A stretch of 64,000 nt of DNA from Monocercomonoides exilis PA203. Its lineage: Eukaryota > Protista > Preaxostyla. A program made the position numbers and the translations under genes. The notes below the pieces were generated by a model that worked only from the letters and a program-made list of their open reading frames with translations, did not search any database and was not told where the DNA came from. Position 1 is the stretch's first letter, and each line of letters begins with the position of its first letter. Where the stretch lies: positions 310,001-374,000 of the forward strand of contig LSRY02000052.1 of assembly GCA_001643675.2 (NCBI GenBank). The letters are read 5' to 3'. Shown piece by piece: positions 17,701 to 42,728 of this stretch.

Positions 17701-17887
17701 AAATTTGTATTACTTCATGAATAATGAAAAATTCTTTAAACTGGTTATATTTTCAATAAATTATAATGGTTATTTCTGTGAAAACAGCATAATGGAGACA
17801 TTGATCAGATTTTTAAATTAAATTGGTGTGAATAATTTATTTTCTTTGTTCAGAAAGCAATAAAAATTTCTTTACTTTAAATAGAAA

Positions 17888-18494
17888 ATGGCTGCAAAAA
17901 AGGAAAGAAATTTGGCAGATGAAATATTTTATTCTGAACGTGTACACGATGATTATTATGAATATCGGTATTATTTCTTTTTTGGAAGTGATTGTTTTAT
18001 TATAATTGATTTTATTGTTTAAATATACAATTTGTTAACGAAATACTGTTTAGTCATGTTATTCTACCAAAAGAACTTGCAGAAAAAGGTTAATAACTTT
18101 TTTTTGTTATTGATTAATATTTTTGCTTGATTTTAGTTCCTAAAGATCATTTTATGACAGAAGAGGAATGGAGGAGGCTTGGGATTTGTCAGTCAGTTGG
18201 GTATGATTTGTTTTAATATCTTATATTTCATTCTTCATTTTTTTTATATAGATGGGTTTGCCTGCTGTTTTTCGAGTGATAGTCCATTTTTTTATCATTT
18301 TTTTTATTGTTTCTTTTCTTTCTGGATTAATGTTTTACCGAACATTTTGATTTAACAACAGGGTATGAGGCTTTTATTTTTATAAAATTTAATTTATTAA
18401 CTTTTATTAACTTATCTCCAAAGAACATTTTGACATGCATCCCCCAGAACCTCACATCATTCTATTTCGAAGACCTCTTCCAAAGCCTAATTGA
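17888..18494 (+). CDS. CKS1: Cyclin-dependent kinase regulatory subunit Cks1/Suc1, 84 aa, 6 exons (17888-17967, 18054-18088, 18137-18200, 18252-18255, 18362, 18424-18494)
   Basis: Not in the ORF track. Spliced product: [84 protein letters not shown]. It has the Cks signatures YEYRHV.LP, EEEWR.LG..QS.GW and PEPHI.LFRRP. Exons total 255 nt and all introns are GT-AG. Confidence 0.95.
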
Positions 18495-19041
18495 TCTATT
18501 TTATTTTATGAATTCTTCCTACACATTTCACCCCTCTTTTGCAACATTTGATTGCTGCAAATGAGTTTTGCAAATTTTCATTGTTTAACTCTTAAAACTG
18601 AATAACTATATTCATTGATAAATCAACATTTATTTATGGTTGAATTTGAGACCATTAATGAAGCAAGAAATTATTACACTTGGATCATGTTCATCACTTA
18701 TTGTTTATTCAAAAAAGTATTTAAAAATTTCTACTATTATCACGTGAAAACAAAATTCCCTTTCAAAGGCGAAATAAAAAAAATTGTATAAAAAAAGCTT
18801 GACGTTATCTGATTTCCATGTTATAAAGCAAGACATAAAGACAAGCAAAAACTGGAATACTTAAGGCTTATTAATCTCAGAAAAGATTTTTGAATATTAA
18901 ACAATGATAACAAAACTAAAATGAAAATGAGATGATAATAAAAGCCGCTGATGAAATACAAAGAAAACCACAAAAATTATAATAGGAAGAAGTTATAATG
19001 AGATGAAGAATTAGAAAATGAAATGAGAACGACAATTAATT

Positions 19042-20521
19042 TTATTGTTCCATTAATCCATTTCCTTCCTCCATATTCACGAGACGCATTCTTCCTTGAC
19101 TATCTTTCACAACAAGATGGACATAGCACGGATATGCACAACAGCCAATTGTCGTTTTGAAAGCAGCAATCATCGAGAATAATAGTGCGAAAATAAAAGG
19201 CACAATCCCCAATAACACCAGCAGGTAAGTGGGGAGATATTGCTATTTTAAATGCAGGAGTGATATAAAATTATAATGAAAACGAAAATAAATATATTAA
19301 TAAATAAATAAATTATAAAAATGAAATAACAAAAAAAATCCAACAAAAATGTAACATTCACATTGTGACATATTAAAAACAATACATCATTATGAAAAAG
19401 CATCCTTCATCACTTTTATATCAAAATCAAACCTGAAATGCAAAATAACAAGGAGCATTAATTCCTAAGGGCGTCGCATAAAAGTTGGTAATATTTGGGC
19501 ACTTGTTGTGAGAACAATCCGTTTTTCCTTTTAAATCTACCGGAATTGCCTGATATTTGTGAAAAAAAAAATATGAATAGAATATATAATAAATGGATTT
19601 TGCATTTGATTTGCCATTATCATCAATAAAGAATTTTCAAATTCAAAAAAAAAAAAATAAAAACGTTTTTCACACCATGACATTGGCTTCTAAAGAAACA
19701 GTATTCAACTCTTTTTGTCTTTCAACTTTTTTGAAATCTTCTTCATCATCAGTAACATAGCAGAAACGTATTGTCTGACGTAACTCAGACTTGAATGGAA
19801 CCTCAACCTCTTTTCCAGCATTCACAATACCTTCCGATAATATTACTTGATGATCTTTCAACTAGCAATCGAAGAAATAAATACATTGCATCGGTAAAAA
19901 TTAAAACAATTTAAAAAGCATACAGTAGTTATTGTATAATTTGTATCCACAGAAAGTTTACCTGAAATAAATTTAACAGGTTCAGTCATTGATGGCAGTA
20001 TGACTTCATGTGAACACATTTGTTTCTGATTTAAGTCAAGATGCAATTGCTTACGTTGCAGTTCTGTTGTAAAATCTTTCATTTCATTTGCTCCAACTAC
20101 CAAGCAATTATCCATGCTCGATATCTAATTATCATTAATTCAAAAATTTTTATGAATTGAAATGCAAATATAGTCAAACAGCAATATCAGTTTCCCCAGT
20201 AAAATCAAAACGTTCTCCCATTGGCCAATAAATAAATTCACTTTCTTCTGTCAAAGCAAAATGATATTTAACATTAACTGCCACAATAATTCCAACAGCA
20301 AGTGTAATTAAAAGTGCTACCCAGCACATTGTTGTTCGAAGTATTGTTGGCATTGTCGGCCTCCACCAATCTGTTGTTGACAACAATTTTATTCAAAATG
20401 TCTAATTTAATAAAAAATGAAATTCATGCCTTTAGGATCATATTTTAATGAAGAATCAAAACTTATCGATTAAAAACATAAATGTGTATCTTTTATAAAA
20501 TAAATGAAATTCATACGGCAT
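19042..20521 (-). CDS. Hypothetical membrane protein with two TM segments flanking a Cys-containing domain, 7 exons
   Basis: MPFDSSLKYDPKDWWRPTMPTILRTTMCWVALLITLAVGIIVAV...YLLVLLGIVPFIFALLFSMIAAF...EQ*. In-frame joins include one GC-AG intron (20429-20371). Confidence 0.65.
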
Positions 20522-20631
20522 CAATATAACGGAAAATCGAAGAAAAATAAAGTTAGCGATCACTTCCCTTCAATGCACATTTTTTTAAATTACATTATGG
20601 TGTCGATCATTAAGCTTTTTAAATTTTTGAA

Positions 20632-22386
20632 ATGGCAGAAGCAGCTGTATGAAAATAATATTGCATTAATTAATTAATTAATAATTTTCTTTTTGTCGCA
20701 TTTCAAATCGATTTATCTTTGAAAATGCTATTTTTCAATGTTCTGTCAGAGTATGCTTTTTTAATTGTTAAAAACAATGCAGATGCAAATTTGGATTCTT
20801 ATTAACAACCTTTCTATTTTACGTTTATATGTTATATGAATACGATATTATTTAGCTTCTGAATATTCCGCATCAGAAAGTTTAGAACAATTGATGAGAG
20901 AATCAACCATGCTCCTTGAAACAGGTTTATAATTTTCAATTATTGATGCACATTTACAACACTGACAATTTTATTAATTGTTAAATGTAAATCATGCTTT
21001 TAGGTCTTAAAGATACTCGCCAAAGTTCTTCAAGAGCCGCTCCAACTTCATCAAGCTATTTATCAACTCCCATGCAAACTGGCCCATTTCAGCAACCACA
21101 AACAGCATCTTCTATTCATTCTACTTCTGCATACAACCAGCCATTTCTATCTTCAACAAACCCTATTCCTCTTTCATCTACTGCACCTTCATCAAGCAGT
21201 TCAACTGTGATGTGCGATAGTTGTCCTCCTGAATCTCCAAATCCAGCTGTATATTTTTGCAGACAATGTAGAGGTTTGCATTTTATTAGCATTGGCATAT
21301 TCATAAAATTGCAATAATTTTATTTATACCAATTATCTTTCATTTTTGAAAGGAAACTTTTGTGAAAATTGCGATGCGCAGTTTCATCCATCTCATAATG
21401 CTTTGATGAGCAGACATGTCCGTTTGCCAATTGACTCGTCTCGTTCAGCATTGTTTTGTTCCGAACATCCAGAGGAAGAGCTTTCATACTATTGCTTGAG
21501 CTGCGAAGGCACATGCATTTGCTCTGAATGTGCAATTCGTGGAGCGCATAAAGGGCATGATGTACAGACAATTAGAAAGAGTTACGGTGAGGTACGAAAG
21601 CGTATGAACGAAATTGTATCCGCGTTAGCAATGAGGCAAGAGGCAGTCAAAAAGATTCTAATGCAGATTGAGGCACATGAGCAAGAAATTGCTGATAACA
21701 CACGATCCATAAAAGAGTCAATGGCACTTTCATTTAATGAGCTAAGAGAGAAGATAAGAAGAAAAGAGCTGGAGTTTATGGCTACAGCAGACAAGTTCCA
21801 AGAAGAGCAGATTGCAGAATTATCTTCATTCATATCATATGCACAGACAAAGCAAAATGAGATAACTGGAGCTATTTCTCAGATGAAAGGAGCTAGCGAA
21901 AGCTCAGATGAAATAGGGCTTCTCAACTTTTATGGAACGCATAAACAAGTTGCGACCGATCTTCTAAAAGACACACCAATTGATGTGAGGCTTCCAGAAG
22001 TTGCCAGCAGACGATGCTATTTGGATATGGAAAGTGCAAACAAGCAATTAGAGGGACTTTCAGCATTGCATTTGGCAGTGGCTTCAGTTCAGGCAACATA
22101 CACACAAGGAATAGAAGGAGCACCGGGAATGCTCCCAGGAGCAGAGACTGGAGCACCAATGTCGATGTCGCTTGGAGATGGAGAAAGCGGAACAGAAAGA
22201 GGAGCAATGAGAGCAACACCTTCATCCGCGAGGCAGATGGGGCAGTCTGCTCAAAGCGGTATGGATTCATACTATGGAGCCCCTGGAATGGAGAATTCGG
22301 GAATGGAAGGACGAGAGAGGATGAGTGGAAGGTCAAGCAGAAGAGACAGGGATGTTGAAGGAACAGGAAGAAAGAAGAGATTATGA
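20632..22386 (+). CDS. Tandem B-box zinc finger plus coiled-coil protein (TRIM-like, no RING); exons 20632-20646, 20750, 20856-20924, 21004-21273, 21353-22386
   Basis: B-box1 CDSC...FCRQCRGNFCENCDAQFH...H and B-box2 CSEH...YYCLSC...ICSECAIRGAHKGH, followed by a heptad-rich helix. The 5' exons are in frame only with a 1-nt exon. Confidence 0.88.
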
Positions 22387-38722: not shown

Positions 38723-41700
38723 TTACTGTGCATCTGTCAGGAGATCATCCACAGTTGCTGACGTCTTCAAAGAGGAAGAGCGCAGCTGAGGAGACAGCAA
38801 GTTCGCTAGTGAAGAAGAAGAAGAGGAAAGAGAAGAAGAAGCAATTTGATTGTATGTCGGAGCGAGTGATGTCAAAGCACCTGTCGAAACCAGCTGTGCC
38901 TGTGACTGTGATTGAGTAAGTGCTGTCCCCTTCTCAGCTGCCTCGTCTGCTGCCATCGCTGCCTCTGCCTCGCGTATCGCCATCGACTCCTGCCGCAGCA
39001 TCCTGTTCTCTCTCGCTCTCCTCATCTGCACTCTCTCATTCGCCTCTGTGTCGTCATCGTCTTCGTCGGTCTCGGCATCGCTGTATTCACTTTGTGAGTC
39101 GTCAATCGTCGTCTCTCTGCCTTCGGTGCCTTCTGTTTCATTGTCTGTTGCATCTCCATTCGCTCCTTTCTTCTTCTTGTTCTTCTTGTTTTTCTTATTT
39201 TTCTTCTTCTTCTTCTTCTTCTCTTTATTCCCTTCCTCTCCTTCTCCTTCTCCTTCTCCTTCATTTTCTTCTCCCTCCCCCTCTCCTTCCTCCTTGCTTC
39301 TCCTCTGCTTCTTCCTCAAGTTCGCAAAGGTATCAATATGTGGCTGTGGCTGCATCCCTGCCTCAATCATCAGCTCGTCCAGTTGTGCCTCCAGCTTCTT
39401 CCTCTCTTCGGTCTCCACATCCATCTGCCTCTCAATCTCCCTCTGCACATTCCTCTGCCGCTGCTTCTCCTGCTCTTGCTCCGACTTCCGCCGTTGCTTC
39501 TCCTTCACTTTCAGCGCCAGAAGCTCATCACTCGTCATCACTGGCGTCTGATCTTCTCCTCCTTCTCCTTCTCCTTCTTCTGTCTCTCCTGCTTGTGCCT
39601 TTGCCACTGCCAATCTGTTGGTCTTCTCCTCCTCTCTTCTGATCCTCTCCTTCCACTCTTTCCTCTCCTCCCGCCTTCTCTTCACAAAGTCCATCTTCCT
39701 CTGGTGCTCCACCATTATCAGCTGCAGCGTCTCTCTTTCTCTCTCCCGCACTTCTGACAGCTTTCCTTGCACTTCCTTGATTCGCATCAGCTGCTGCTGC
39801 CTTTTGTACTTCTCCAGCTCCTTCGCACGCTTCTCCCTCGCTTTGCGCTCTTCCTCTTCTTTCTTCTTCTTCGCTTTTGCTTCTTCAATCTTCCTCTTCT
39901 TCTTCAGCTCTGCCTCTTCCCTCTTCCGTCTGTGGTACTCTTCATACAGCTGCCTCTTCCTCTGCTGCTCCTCCTGCATCTTCCTCTTCATCTCCTCCTC
40001 GCAAAAGTCTCTCATCAGAATCTCCTCCCTCTTCATCATCTGCTGCTCAGCATACATCCTCCTCCTTTCTTCCTCCTGCTGCAGACGCTCCTTCCGCCCT
40101 TCCTCTCCCAGCAGCCTCAGCTCTTCCTCCAACATCATCCTCCTCTCCTCCTCCTCGTTCTTCTCCCGGTTCATCTCCATCTTCCTCAGCTTCTCTTTCC
40201 TCTCCCTCTGCCTCTGCTCTTTCTCTTGCTTCAGCTTCGCTATTCTCTCTCTTTCTTCTTGCTCTTTCTTCGCTTTCAGCTCTCTTGCTTGTTTGGCCTT
40301 CTCTTCCTTCTGTTTCCTTTCTTCCTCTTTCTTCTTCTTCTCCTCCCTCTCTTTCCTCCTCCTCTCCTCCCTCTCTTTCCTCCTCCTCTCCTCCCTCTCT
40401 TCCTTCTCCTTCCTCTTCTTCTCCTTCATCTCCTCCTCTTCCTTCCTCTTCCTCTCAACTTCCTCTGGATCCTCCTTTTCTGAGGCATCGCTCGCACTTT
40501 CTGCTTCGCTCTCCAGCTTCTCCATAAACCTCTTCATCCTCTCCTCCTTCAGCTTCCGCTCTGCCTCTTCCACAATCATCTTCTCCATCTCCCTCTCTCT
40601 TTCCTTCTCGTCTGCAATCGCTTTGACTTGTTTTTCCTTCTCTATCAGCTCCTTCCTCGCCTGCTCTTCCCTTTCCAGCCTCTCTTTCTCTCTTTTTTCT
40701 TTCCATTCCTTCAATTGCTGCTCTCTTCTTTCTCTCTCTCTTTCTCTCTCCTTCTCTCTCTCTTTCCTTTCTCTTTCTTCTCTCTCTGCTTTCTCCTTCT
40801 CCTCCTTCATTTTCCGTGCAAACTCTTCTTTCTCCCTCTTTTCTGCCTCTGCCTTCTCCTTCTTCTCCCTCTCTGCTTTTTCTCTCTCCTCCTTGTTCTT
40901 CCTCAGCTGCTCCGCCCTTTCCTTCTTCGCCTTCTCCACTTTCACATTCTCTTCTGCCACCCTCTTCTCCTTCTCTTCTCTGTTCTGTTTGATCCTCTCC
41001 TCCTTCTCCTTCTTATCTTTCTCTTCTTTGTCTCTCTTCGCCTTCTCTCTCCTCTCTCTCTCCTGCCTCTCTTTCCGTGCCAGTATTTCAGCCTCCTTCT
41101 GCTGCCTTTCAAGCTCCTTCTGCTTCTCCCTCTCCATCTTCGCCTTCAGCTCTGCCTCATCTCGCTCCCTCTTCTTCTTCTCCTCTGCCTCTCTTCTTTC
41201 TCTGTCTTCTTTCTCCTTCTTTTCCCTCTCTTCCTTCTGTTGCCTCGCCTTCTCCTCTCTCCACTGCCTCTCCTTCTCTCTCTTCTCTTCTGCCAGCTTC
41301 TCCTGCATTTCTCTTTCTTCTTTCTCTTTCCTCTCTTTCTCTTCCTTCATAATCCTCATCTGCTCCCTCCTTTCTTTCTCTTCCTGCTCTTTCCTCTCTC
41401 TCTCCTTCCTCTCCTTCTCCTTCTTCTCTTCTCTCCCTTTCTTCTCCCTTTCTCTCTTCATCCTTTCCTCTTTCTCTTGTTCTTCTTTCTCTTCCTGCAG
41501 CTTCTTCTCCATCTCCTCCTTTTCTCTTCGTATCTGCTCCAACCTCTCCCTCTTCATCTTCTCTTCTCTCTCTTTCTTCTCTTTCTCTGCTTTCTCCTTC
41601 TCCTCTCTTTCTCTCCTCTTCCGCTCTTCCTCTTCTTTCCTCTGTCTTTTGATTTCCTCCTCTTCTTTTGCCCGCTCTGCCCTTTCTTTCTCTCTCTTCG

Positions 41701-42728
41701 CTCTTTCAATACGCTCTCTTTCTTCCTTCTCTGCTCTTTCTCTCTCTTCCTTCTCCTTCTTCTGCCTCCTCCTCTCCTCAATCATCTTCTCCCTCTCCAA
41801 ATCCCTTTCTGCCCCTTCTCTCTCTTTCCTCTCTCTTTCCCTCTTCTCATAATTCTCCAATAATACTCTATCTCTCTCTTCTTTCTCCTTCCTCTTCTTT
41901 TCTTCCTCTTCTTCTTTTCTCCTCCTTTCTTCTTCAATCATCTTCTGCTTCTGAATCCGATGGAGCTCTGCTTTCTCTTTCAGTTCTCTTTCATACTTCT
42001 CCCTCATTTCTTGTTCTTCCCTCTCCTTTCTCTCTGCCCTTTCTCTTTCTTTCCTCTCTTTCTCTTCTCTTTCCTCCCTCATCTTCTGTTCCTTCAGCCT
42101 CTTCTCTGCTTCCCTCTTCTCCCTCTCCTCCTTCTGTCTCCTCGCCCTCTCCTCCTCTTGCCTTCTCTCTCTTTCCAATCTTTCCCTCCTTTCTTTTCTC
42201 CTCTGCTCCTCCATCTCCAATCTCTTCCTCTCCTCCTCTTCTTCCTCCAGCTCCCTCTTCGTCTTGTACGTCCTCCTCTGCATTCTGCCTCTGTTAGACA
42301 CCCACTTCTCTCTGCCCCACAAATCTCCGCCTTCCTCTTCCTCTCCTGGTGTCTTCAGTTCTCTTTCTCTCTCTCTTTCTCCTTCTCTTTCTCTCTCCTT
42401 CTCCTTCTCCTTCTCTCTGTCGCTTTCCACCAGCGTCACTGGCGAATGCACAGAAGAATACACAGCAAACGACGACGAGCGTGAAAGAGGTGTCTGTCTG
42501 CCAGCATTGACAGAGACTGAACGCAGCTGACTCATCCGCTGCTGCTCAGCCAGACGCGACTGCCGCAGCCTCTCTTCCATCTGCGCTGTCCTCTCGTCTT
42601 CTTTCGCCAGACGCTCTGAAATACGCTGCAGGGCACGCGACCAGACATCGGCATGCACTCGCTCTTTCCACTTCTCTGAAGGGAGGGAGAGAGAGGGGGA
42701 GGAAGAGGAAGAGAAAGAAGAAGAAGAA

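Follow-up and report, generated by a model that had tools for sequence, protein, structure and literature searches.

Probable single-nucleotide exons in two neighbouring, unrelated genes of the oxymonad Monocercomonoides exilis

Introduction

Exons of a single nucleotide have been published as such in only two genes, APC11 of Arabidopsis, where the exon was proven by mutation of the base and by reading of the complementary DNA (cDNA) (Guo and Liu 2015, PMC4674806), and CYP621A of Fusarium, which its authors call the second known example (Nelson and Syed 2026, PMC12940212). In plants, ultra-short microexons of 1-15 nucleotides (nt) have been catalogued in the MEPDB resource (PMC12409088). The present work deals with two candidate one-base exons in a 64-kb stretch of DNA (C50:310001-374000, hereafter the window) of the 82.3-Mb assembly (101 contigs) of the oxymonad Monocercomonoides exilis. 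One is a G at position 18362 of the window, in the gene CKS1 of this mitochondrion-less protist, and the other an A at position 20750, in a B-box zinc-finger gene. We consider it likely that both are old single-nucleotide exons in unrelated genes, joined to their neighbours by ordinary splicing and arranged in a layout that is very rare.

The M. exilis assembly was built from nanopore reads, polished with Illumina reads, and carries 18,152 gene models with 35,345 introns of 119 nt on average. According to the genome paper, GT-AG introns are ubiquitous in this organism, AT-AC boundaries do not occur and the components of the minor spliceosome are absent. An original prediction, made from the letters of the window, had proposed that the context CAG-N-GTATG marks a lineage-wide system of one-base exons, common throughout the genome and possibly used as on/off switches of expression.

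Results

Two candidate sites in the window

The window contains exactly two copies of the motif CAGNGTATG, at 18359-18367 and at 20747-20755, both on the forward strand, where they read CAG-G-GTATG (N being G at 18362) and CAG-A-GTATG (N being A at 20750). The two sites that had been placed about 2.4 kb apart in unrelated genes are thus indeed present. Each base is preceded by a stretch running from GT to AG, 18256-18361 (106 nt, the final 77 nt free of AG) in CKS1 and 20647-20749 (103 nt, the final 101 nt free of AG) in the B-box gene. Together with the stretches that follow them (61 nt and 105 nt, respectively), these make up flanking introns which all have GT..AG ends and are AT-rich and AG-poor, like the ordinary introns nearby.

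CKS1: transcript structure and origin of the extra base

The CKS1 locus (17888-18494, forward strand) was recognised by a six-frame match to PF01111 (CKS/Suc1) of 37.1 bits, against a family cut-off of 27, spliced gene models being searched one exon at a time. The RNA evidence consisted of assembled contigs from four runs of one study, placed on 5.9 kb of the window. Exon 1 (17888-17967) opens with the start codon at 17888, in agreement with the start of the published protein P0004, and an RNA joint with GT..AG ends (17967/18054) leads to exon 2 (18054-18088), which is bounded on both sides by RNA joints with such ends. Exon 3 (18137-18200) closes with the GG of a split Gly codon, as indicated by its exon-wise translation and by the RNA contigs of all four runs, which place its end at 18200.

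In all four runs, the next RNA joint connects 18200 with 18423, ATGG being inserted between its two sides, and the messenger RNA (mRNA) reads ...GG + ATGG + G + AA..., in frame, giving Gly-Trp-Glu across the tiny exons and then the last exon. The CKS1 transcript contains a 4-nt exon, ATGG (18252-18255, the third base of Gly followed by Trp), and one additional G; the letters ATGG imply a 51-nt GT..AG intron (18201-18251) after exon 3. The last exon (18424-18494), which comprises AA, 22 codons and the stop, was placed by RNA contigs and by translation. Its product aligns with residues 56-76 of the human CKS2 and CKS1 structures (E = 9e-6) and includes the C-terminal strand with His-x-Pro-Glu-Pro-His, in line with membership of the family. 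The additional G, with which the Glu codon of the G-W-E motif begins, very probably represents a one-base exon at 18362, lying between the 106-nt intron (18256-18361, GTTTG...CAG) and a 61-nt intron (18363-18423, GTATG...AAG), both delimited by their sequence features. A transcript junction carrying an extra base, which had been expected if such exons were real, was therefore found.

Several points weigh against placing this exon at 18362. Three genomic G could supply the extra base, namely 18256 (followed by a TT-AG intron), 18362 (between the 106- and 61-nt GT-AG introns) and 18423 (preceded by a GT-AA intron), and the mature mRNA cannot discriminate between them. The RNA aligner itself assigned the base to the acceptor G at 18423, with GT..AA ends. 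Since the base is a G, the same ambiguity applies in all five of the CKS loci compared below. Partly spliced CKS1 molecules were not seen among the assembled contigs, none of which spans the introns. The gene could thus be read with a 5-nt exon ATGGG and a TT-AG intron, or with ATGG and a GT-AA intron, the internal AG-G-GT being a mere bystander, and either reading yields exactly the observed mRNA. We nevertheless regard these readings as quite unlikely. They need TT or TA donors, or AA or CA acceptors, which are inconsistent between loci and do not behave as a non-canonical or U12-type class would, while the genome paper describes GT-AG introns only and no U12-type system; the eight other RNA joints in the 5.9 kb, besides that of the tiny exons, are all GT-AG (8/8). 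A bystander would moreover leave an AG-G-GTNTG island in five diverged loci unexplained, and local introns avoid internal AG, so that an AG some 60 nt before an intron end would be expected to be used.

An assembly error, in which a G was lost from the G-run after ATGG and the true gene has a 5-nt exon and a single intron, is hardly credible. Nanopore reads, on which the assembly is based, are indeed prone to homopolymer errors, but polishing with Illumina reads was applied, and the same run of three G followed by T is found in the three M. exilis paralogs, in the Streblomastix strix assembly and in a JGI metagenome contig, which are independent assemblies.

Conservation of the CKS1 layout

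The assignment of the exon to G18362 was further examined in five CKS loci: the three that the M. exilis genome contains, which are paralogs, a gene of S. strix and the JGI metagenome contig, these last two having been located starting from the annotated M. exilis CKS protein. The layout was the same in 5/5 loci: exon 3 ends in GG and is followed by an intron, the 4-nt exon, a second intron (67-106 nt), AG-G-GT, a third intron (40-70 nt) and the last exon. The 4-nt exon is ATGG, but CTGG in S. strix; the intron homologous to 18256-18361 measures 67-97 nt in the remaining four loci, and G-W-E or G-W-V is encoded by all five. When the three M. exilis copies were aligned, the AG-G-GT-N-TG island was the sole conserved block within the intron. 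In shuffled composite CKS introns, AG-N-GTNTG appeared by chance at 0.004-0.011 per locus, both halves being required to be at least 35 nt long. The expectation that the arrangement would be conserved in related organisms was thus confirmed for CKS1 in the oxymonad loci, and it extends to the B-box gene (see below).

Skipping of either one-base exon would shift the reading frame, as had been pointed out. No CKS1 isoform that skips the extra base was found in the four RNA runs, all of which contain only the form that includes it, and this leaves the proposed on/off switch unsupported.

Two further observations were made on CKS genes. In S. strix, exon 3 (L010 2780-2785) carries an in-frame TAA at the position of an M. 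exilis Gln codon, which is consistent with the reassignment of TAA to Gln in this species. In M. exilis, an RNA contig of run X1 has, ahead of 17877, 12 letters that match 17806-17817, corresponding to a joint that spans about 60 nt of the 5' untranslated region (5'UTR) of CKS1. This joint (17806-17883) is flanked by a 6-nt direct repeat and lacks GT-AG ends. Possible explanations are an unusual, non-canonical intron of the 5'UTR, an allele with a deletion, and a join made at the repeat during assembly.

The B-box zinc-finger gene

Sequence comparison suggests, with rather less certainty than for CKS1, that the B-box gene probably holds a one-base exon too, A20750. On the forward strand, the proposed exon 1 (20632-20646, 15 nt) would consist of the start and four codons, with a GTATG donor after it. 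The 103-nt intron described above (20647-20749) would then lead to the A at 20750, first base of a Thr codon, and a second intron of 105 nt (20751-20855, GTATG...TAG) to an exon in phase 1 (20856-20924), which contains the annotated start Met at 20893 and is covered by RNA contigs from about 20877 and by a joint at 20924/21004. The two introns were delimited by sequence features, and the one-base exon by the frame of the 20856 exon and by the occurrence of CAG-purine-GT in relatives.

The proposal draws on the frame of the exon at 20856. This exon requires a single further base ahead of it, and its frame is closed by a TGA at 20837; in both M. exilis copies of the gene, this exon is stopped in frame a few codons upstream, without an ATG. 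Upstream of the annotated Met, the copies on C50 and C13 differ at 7 positions, 5 of which are third codon positions (P = 0.045). At the annotated M. exilis start, the Blattamonas ortholog lacks a Met, and Leu-Glu-Gln upstream of this position is kept. Taken together, the third-position differences, the closure by a stop codon and the Blattamonas sequence without Met make it probable that this exon is translated throughout, from 20856 on and in phase 1, and the upstream exons must therefore total 1 modulo 3.

The comparison covered three loci, namely the window copy, its M. exilis paralog on C13 (L005), which shows 95% protein identity over the large exon searched (344 aa), and the ortholog of Blattamonas (L009, 54% protein identity). 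The layout proposed in the window was recovered in both others. The ATG exon measures 15 nt in the window, 15 nt in the C13 copy and 18 nt in Blattamonas, with the donors GTATG, GTGTG and GTATG, respectively; the first intron, almost free of AG, measures 103, 113 and 92 nt; the one-base site reads CAG-A-GT, CAG-A-GT and CAG-G-GTGTG; and the second intron measures 105, 105 and 87 nt. A scan of metagenomes for further B-box orthologs returned only relatives of 31% identity, and the Logan contig of one B-box relative (L012) stops short of the 5' end of the gene.

Other findings weigh against a one-base exon in this gene. Over 20455-20848 the RNA depth is zero, which leaves the proposed exon 1 and the one-base exon uncovered, and in each of three runs the contigs start only at about 20877. 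Between the two M. exilis copies, the introns have retained a similarity of about 70%, so their shared island is weak evidence and could have been inherited by descent alone. In addition, an in-frame ATG lies shortly ahead of the A in both M. exilis copies and would extend the first exon, and another, inside the second intron of Blattamonas, offers an alternative, unspliced start that is used by its annotation. It is possible, although we doubt it, that A20750 merely ends a longer first exon, with its own ATG situated 13 nt ahead of the donor in the window and 31 nt ahead of it on C13, or that translation starts at Met 20893, as in the published protein P0001, with the upstream part untranslated. 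However, the upstream ATGs stand at non-homologous positions in the two M. exilis copies, and by our own count on the sequence the equivalent ATG of Blattamonas is out of frame, whereas an ATG exon of 15 or 18 nt with a consensus donor is present in 3/3 loci. The pattern of third-position differences and the conserved Leu-Glu-Gln point to coding sequence upstream of a Met which Blattamonas does not have. The base at the junction separates the models, as a one-base exon would place an A there and the shifted-boundary alternatives a G.

Two other views of this site were abandoned. It was initially taken for a chance motif, RNA depth being zero and the annotated start lying downstream, until the C13 paralog and the Blattamonas ortholog overturned this view. 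A canonical model with a 33-nt intron preserves the reading frame in the window, but nothing in the C13 copy corresponds to it, and the intron would be shorter than any local one.

Search for a shared context and for further one-base exons

The original prediction had attributed to both sites a shared special context, and had seen in two cases among about 17 genes a sign that one-base exons are common in this genome. On this point, our results were clearly negative. The count of the bare motif CAGNGTATG is within chance, with 0.64 copies expected per window and at least 2 copies in 14/100 shuffles. Genome-wide, YAGNGTATG was found 1280 times, less often than its reversed control (1935 times), and TTTCAG-N-GTATG occurs at 30 sites, where the mean over spacings 0-8 is 29, so that no excess, and hence no enrichment of the motif, is seen at spacing 1. 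Nor is the context kept among homologous one-base exons, in which the relatives show TAG-G-GTTTG, AAG-G-GTATG, CAG-G-GTGTG, AAG-G-GTTTG and CAG-A-GTTAG, with TAG or AAG acceptors and GTTTG, GTGTG or GTTAG donors. What these sequences have in common is AG, one base and a normal donor, nothing further.

The long U-rich stretch without AG in the preceding introns, which had been emphasized as well, is real (106 and 103 nt introns) but not special. Nine ordinary RNA-supported introns nearby (17968-21352) are free of AG over 46-160 nt, almost their whole length, for instance over 124 of 126 nt or 160 of 190 nt. Long tracts without AG thus characterize the introns of this region in general, which fits the use, as acceptor, of the first AG after the branch region.

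The frequency of one-base exons was approached through the first 42 listed genome-wide motif sites, judged partly by eye. None of these looked like a one-base exon (0/42); most lie in G+C-rich coding sequence, and the few AT-rich ones correspond to ordinary exon ends, acceptors, repeats or sequence antisense to genes. This gives an upper bound of about 7%, which corresponds to some 90 sites with precisely this context, an estimate whose dependence on 42 sites scored partly by eye counts against our reading of the layout as rare. By contrast, two cases per 17 genes, as extrapolated from the window, would amount to about 2100, above the total of 1280 motif sites, and such a frequency can be excluded. 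An automatic classifier based on open frames found no one-base exons, but it also missed both known cases, their upstream exons being tiny, and it served only for sorting sites into coding and non-coding context.

A strict filter was also defined, combining AG-N-GTNTG, 45 nt free of AG upstream and at most 30% G+C in both 60-nt flanks. When both strands of the 64 kb were scanned, or 128 kb of strand sequence in total, it returned the two flagged sites and no others, with thresholds that were set after these sites had been seen and loosened once to pass both, and that are thus not independent of them; in a 57-kb sample, it gave one antisense match. Such a filter could seed a genome-wide, RNA-backed search, provided that its specificity holds in other stretches of the genome.

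A dedicated lineage-wide system that recognizes CAG-N-GTATG, with many such exons and possibly frameshift switches among them, consequently appears very unlikely. Two probable cases within 2.4 kb speak in its favor, and the 5' splice site and U1 of M. exilis are said to be co-adapted. Yet the context is not kept in homologs, enrichment is lacking, 0/42 sites proved to be such exons and no skipped isoform appears in the four runs; furthermore, plant and fungal spliceosomes also splice one-base exons, so special machinery is not required. The identification of both sites as one-base exons fared better, strongly for CKS1 (four RNA runs and five loci) and probably for the B-box gene (three loci, without RNA cover). 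We conclude that one-base exons recur in oxymonads but are rare, use ordinary machinery in no special context, and are overlooked by standard gene prediction.

Other features of the region

CKS1 and the B-box gene are adjacent in the window (17888-22386, 2.1 kb apart) and again on G000:C13:297600-312000 (about 13 kb apart), where C13 has a CKS paralog beside its B-box copy. This adjacency on both contigs and the 95% identity given above indicate a paralogous duplicated block. About 20 nt 5' of the proposed B-box start codon, the 11-nt block TCGATCATTAA (20603-20613) is identical in the C50 and C13 copies (L005 ~1250-1262), in surroundings that differ between them, and a similar GATCGATCATT is found in an unrelated sampled locus (L014 ~575-590); the block may be a core promoter or initiator element. 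At 22035-22086, three runs show a second RNA contig with four mismatches to the genome, which probably reflects cross-mapping from the C13 paralog or an allele. Elsewhere in the window, positions 40001-42000, with 48% G+C, display an extreme strand asymmetry (GC skew -0.75 and AT skew -0.77) suggestive of a long tract of low complexity that is rich in pyrimidines.

Discussion

This work adds evidence on the B-box site, a test of the shared context and a rough bound on the frequency of one-base exons, all of which are new here. In mechanistic terms, the coding sequence of CKS1 at Gly-Trp-Glu would be cut by three GT-AG introns within five bases, leaving exons of 4 nt and 1 nt, and that of the B-box gene would start with a 15-nt exon followed, probably, by the 1-nt exon A (20750). 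The introns concerned, short (40-190 nt) and almost free of AG, may be recognized as units, each flanking intron having its own donor, body and acceptor, and CAG-purine-GTATG may be no more than an acceptor consensus adjoining a donor consensus. Exon definition would not be needed, since one intron could be recognized before the base and another after it. Pairing of U1 with the downstream donor would overlap the upstream acceptor, in which case both introns could not be engaged together. From this overlap, we infer that the two introns are removed sequentially, in either order, in a manner that would resemble recursive splicing with one base kept; that this step is deduced counts against the overall reading.

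A broader hypothesis would extend these two cases to the whole lineage. The number of 1-4 nt exons in oxymonads may lie between some tens and a few hundred, far above that of other studied lineages, with short, AG-free introns recognized as units tolerating an acceptor and a donor that nearly touch. Such exons could arise where a new intron inserts at a distance of one to a few bases from an existing one, and they could then persist for a very long time; some of them are perhaps skipped deliberately as a frameshift switch. We consider this scenario speculative and rather unlikely.

One practical consequence lies in the published gene models, which had been expected to be mis-annotated at such loci. 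Three of them are indeed wrong, and a fourth probably so. P0004, the M. exilis CKS1 protein of 68 aa, continues from ATGG into the intron and does not include the last exon; P0005, the CKS protein of S. strix, is missing six residues around the tiny exons; P0001, the M. exilis B-box protein, begins at an internal Met (20893); and P0003, the B-box protein of Blattamonas, probably begins inside an intron. The M. exilis CKS1 model is thus left without its His-x-Pro-Glu-Pro-His strand, and comparative work on cell-cycle genes would inherit this error. As for single-nucleotide exons themselves, our results would add two gene families from a deep-branching protist lineage, one of them supported by RNA and both kept across oxymonad genera.

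Among known systems, the ratchet points of long introns in Drosophila and vertebrates (AG-GT, a zero-length exon) resemble the present sites in their juxtaposed acceptor and donor, in the presumed removal of the two halves in sequence and in the rebuilding of a splice site after the first step. The likeness to recursive splicing offset by one base, put forward in the original prediction, holds in these respects. In CKS1, a base separates AG from GT and stays in the mRNA, making a true exon that changes the frame; and the composite stretches measure only 108-219 nt, with flanking introns of 40-113 nt as compared with tens of kilobases at ratchet points. The microexons listed in MEPDB (PMC12409088) and the 9-nt mini-exon of potato invertase are, like ours, constitutive tiny exons in conserved coding motifs that annotation missed, although plant microexons belong to another lineage and are mostly longer than 1 nt.

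The closest parallels remain the two published single-nucleotide exons. The case of CYP621A (PMC12940212) was likewise built on comparison of orthologs and on reading-frame arguments within a conserved motif, with public RNA reads as support; unlike the oxymonad cases, it concerns a fungal P450 and a single gene family, and no neighboring second case was reported. In APC11 (PMC4674806), as here, one base that is essential to the frame has an AG acceptor before it and a GT donor after it, within a stretch annotated as one intron. That gene, too, had been mis-annotated, and the authors of the study also proposed intron definition with stepwise removal. The APC11 base is an A and is unambiguous, whereas that of CKS1 is a G, and APC11 was proven by mutation, whereas the oxymonad evidence consists of RNA contigs and conservation. 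Unlike APC11, the oxymonad cases adjoin a start exon of 15 nt or another tiny exon of 4 nt, and their layout is shared between genera.

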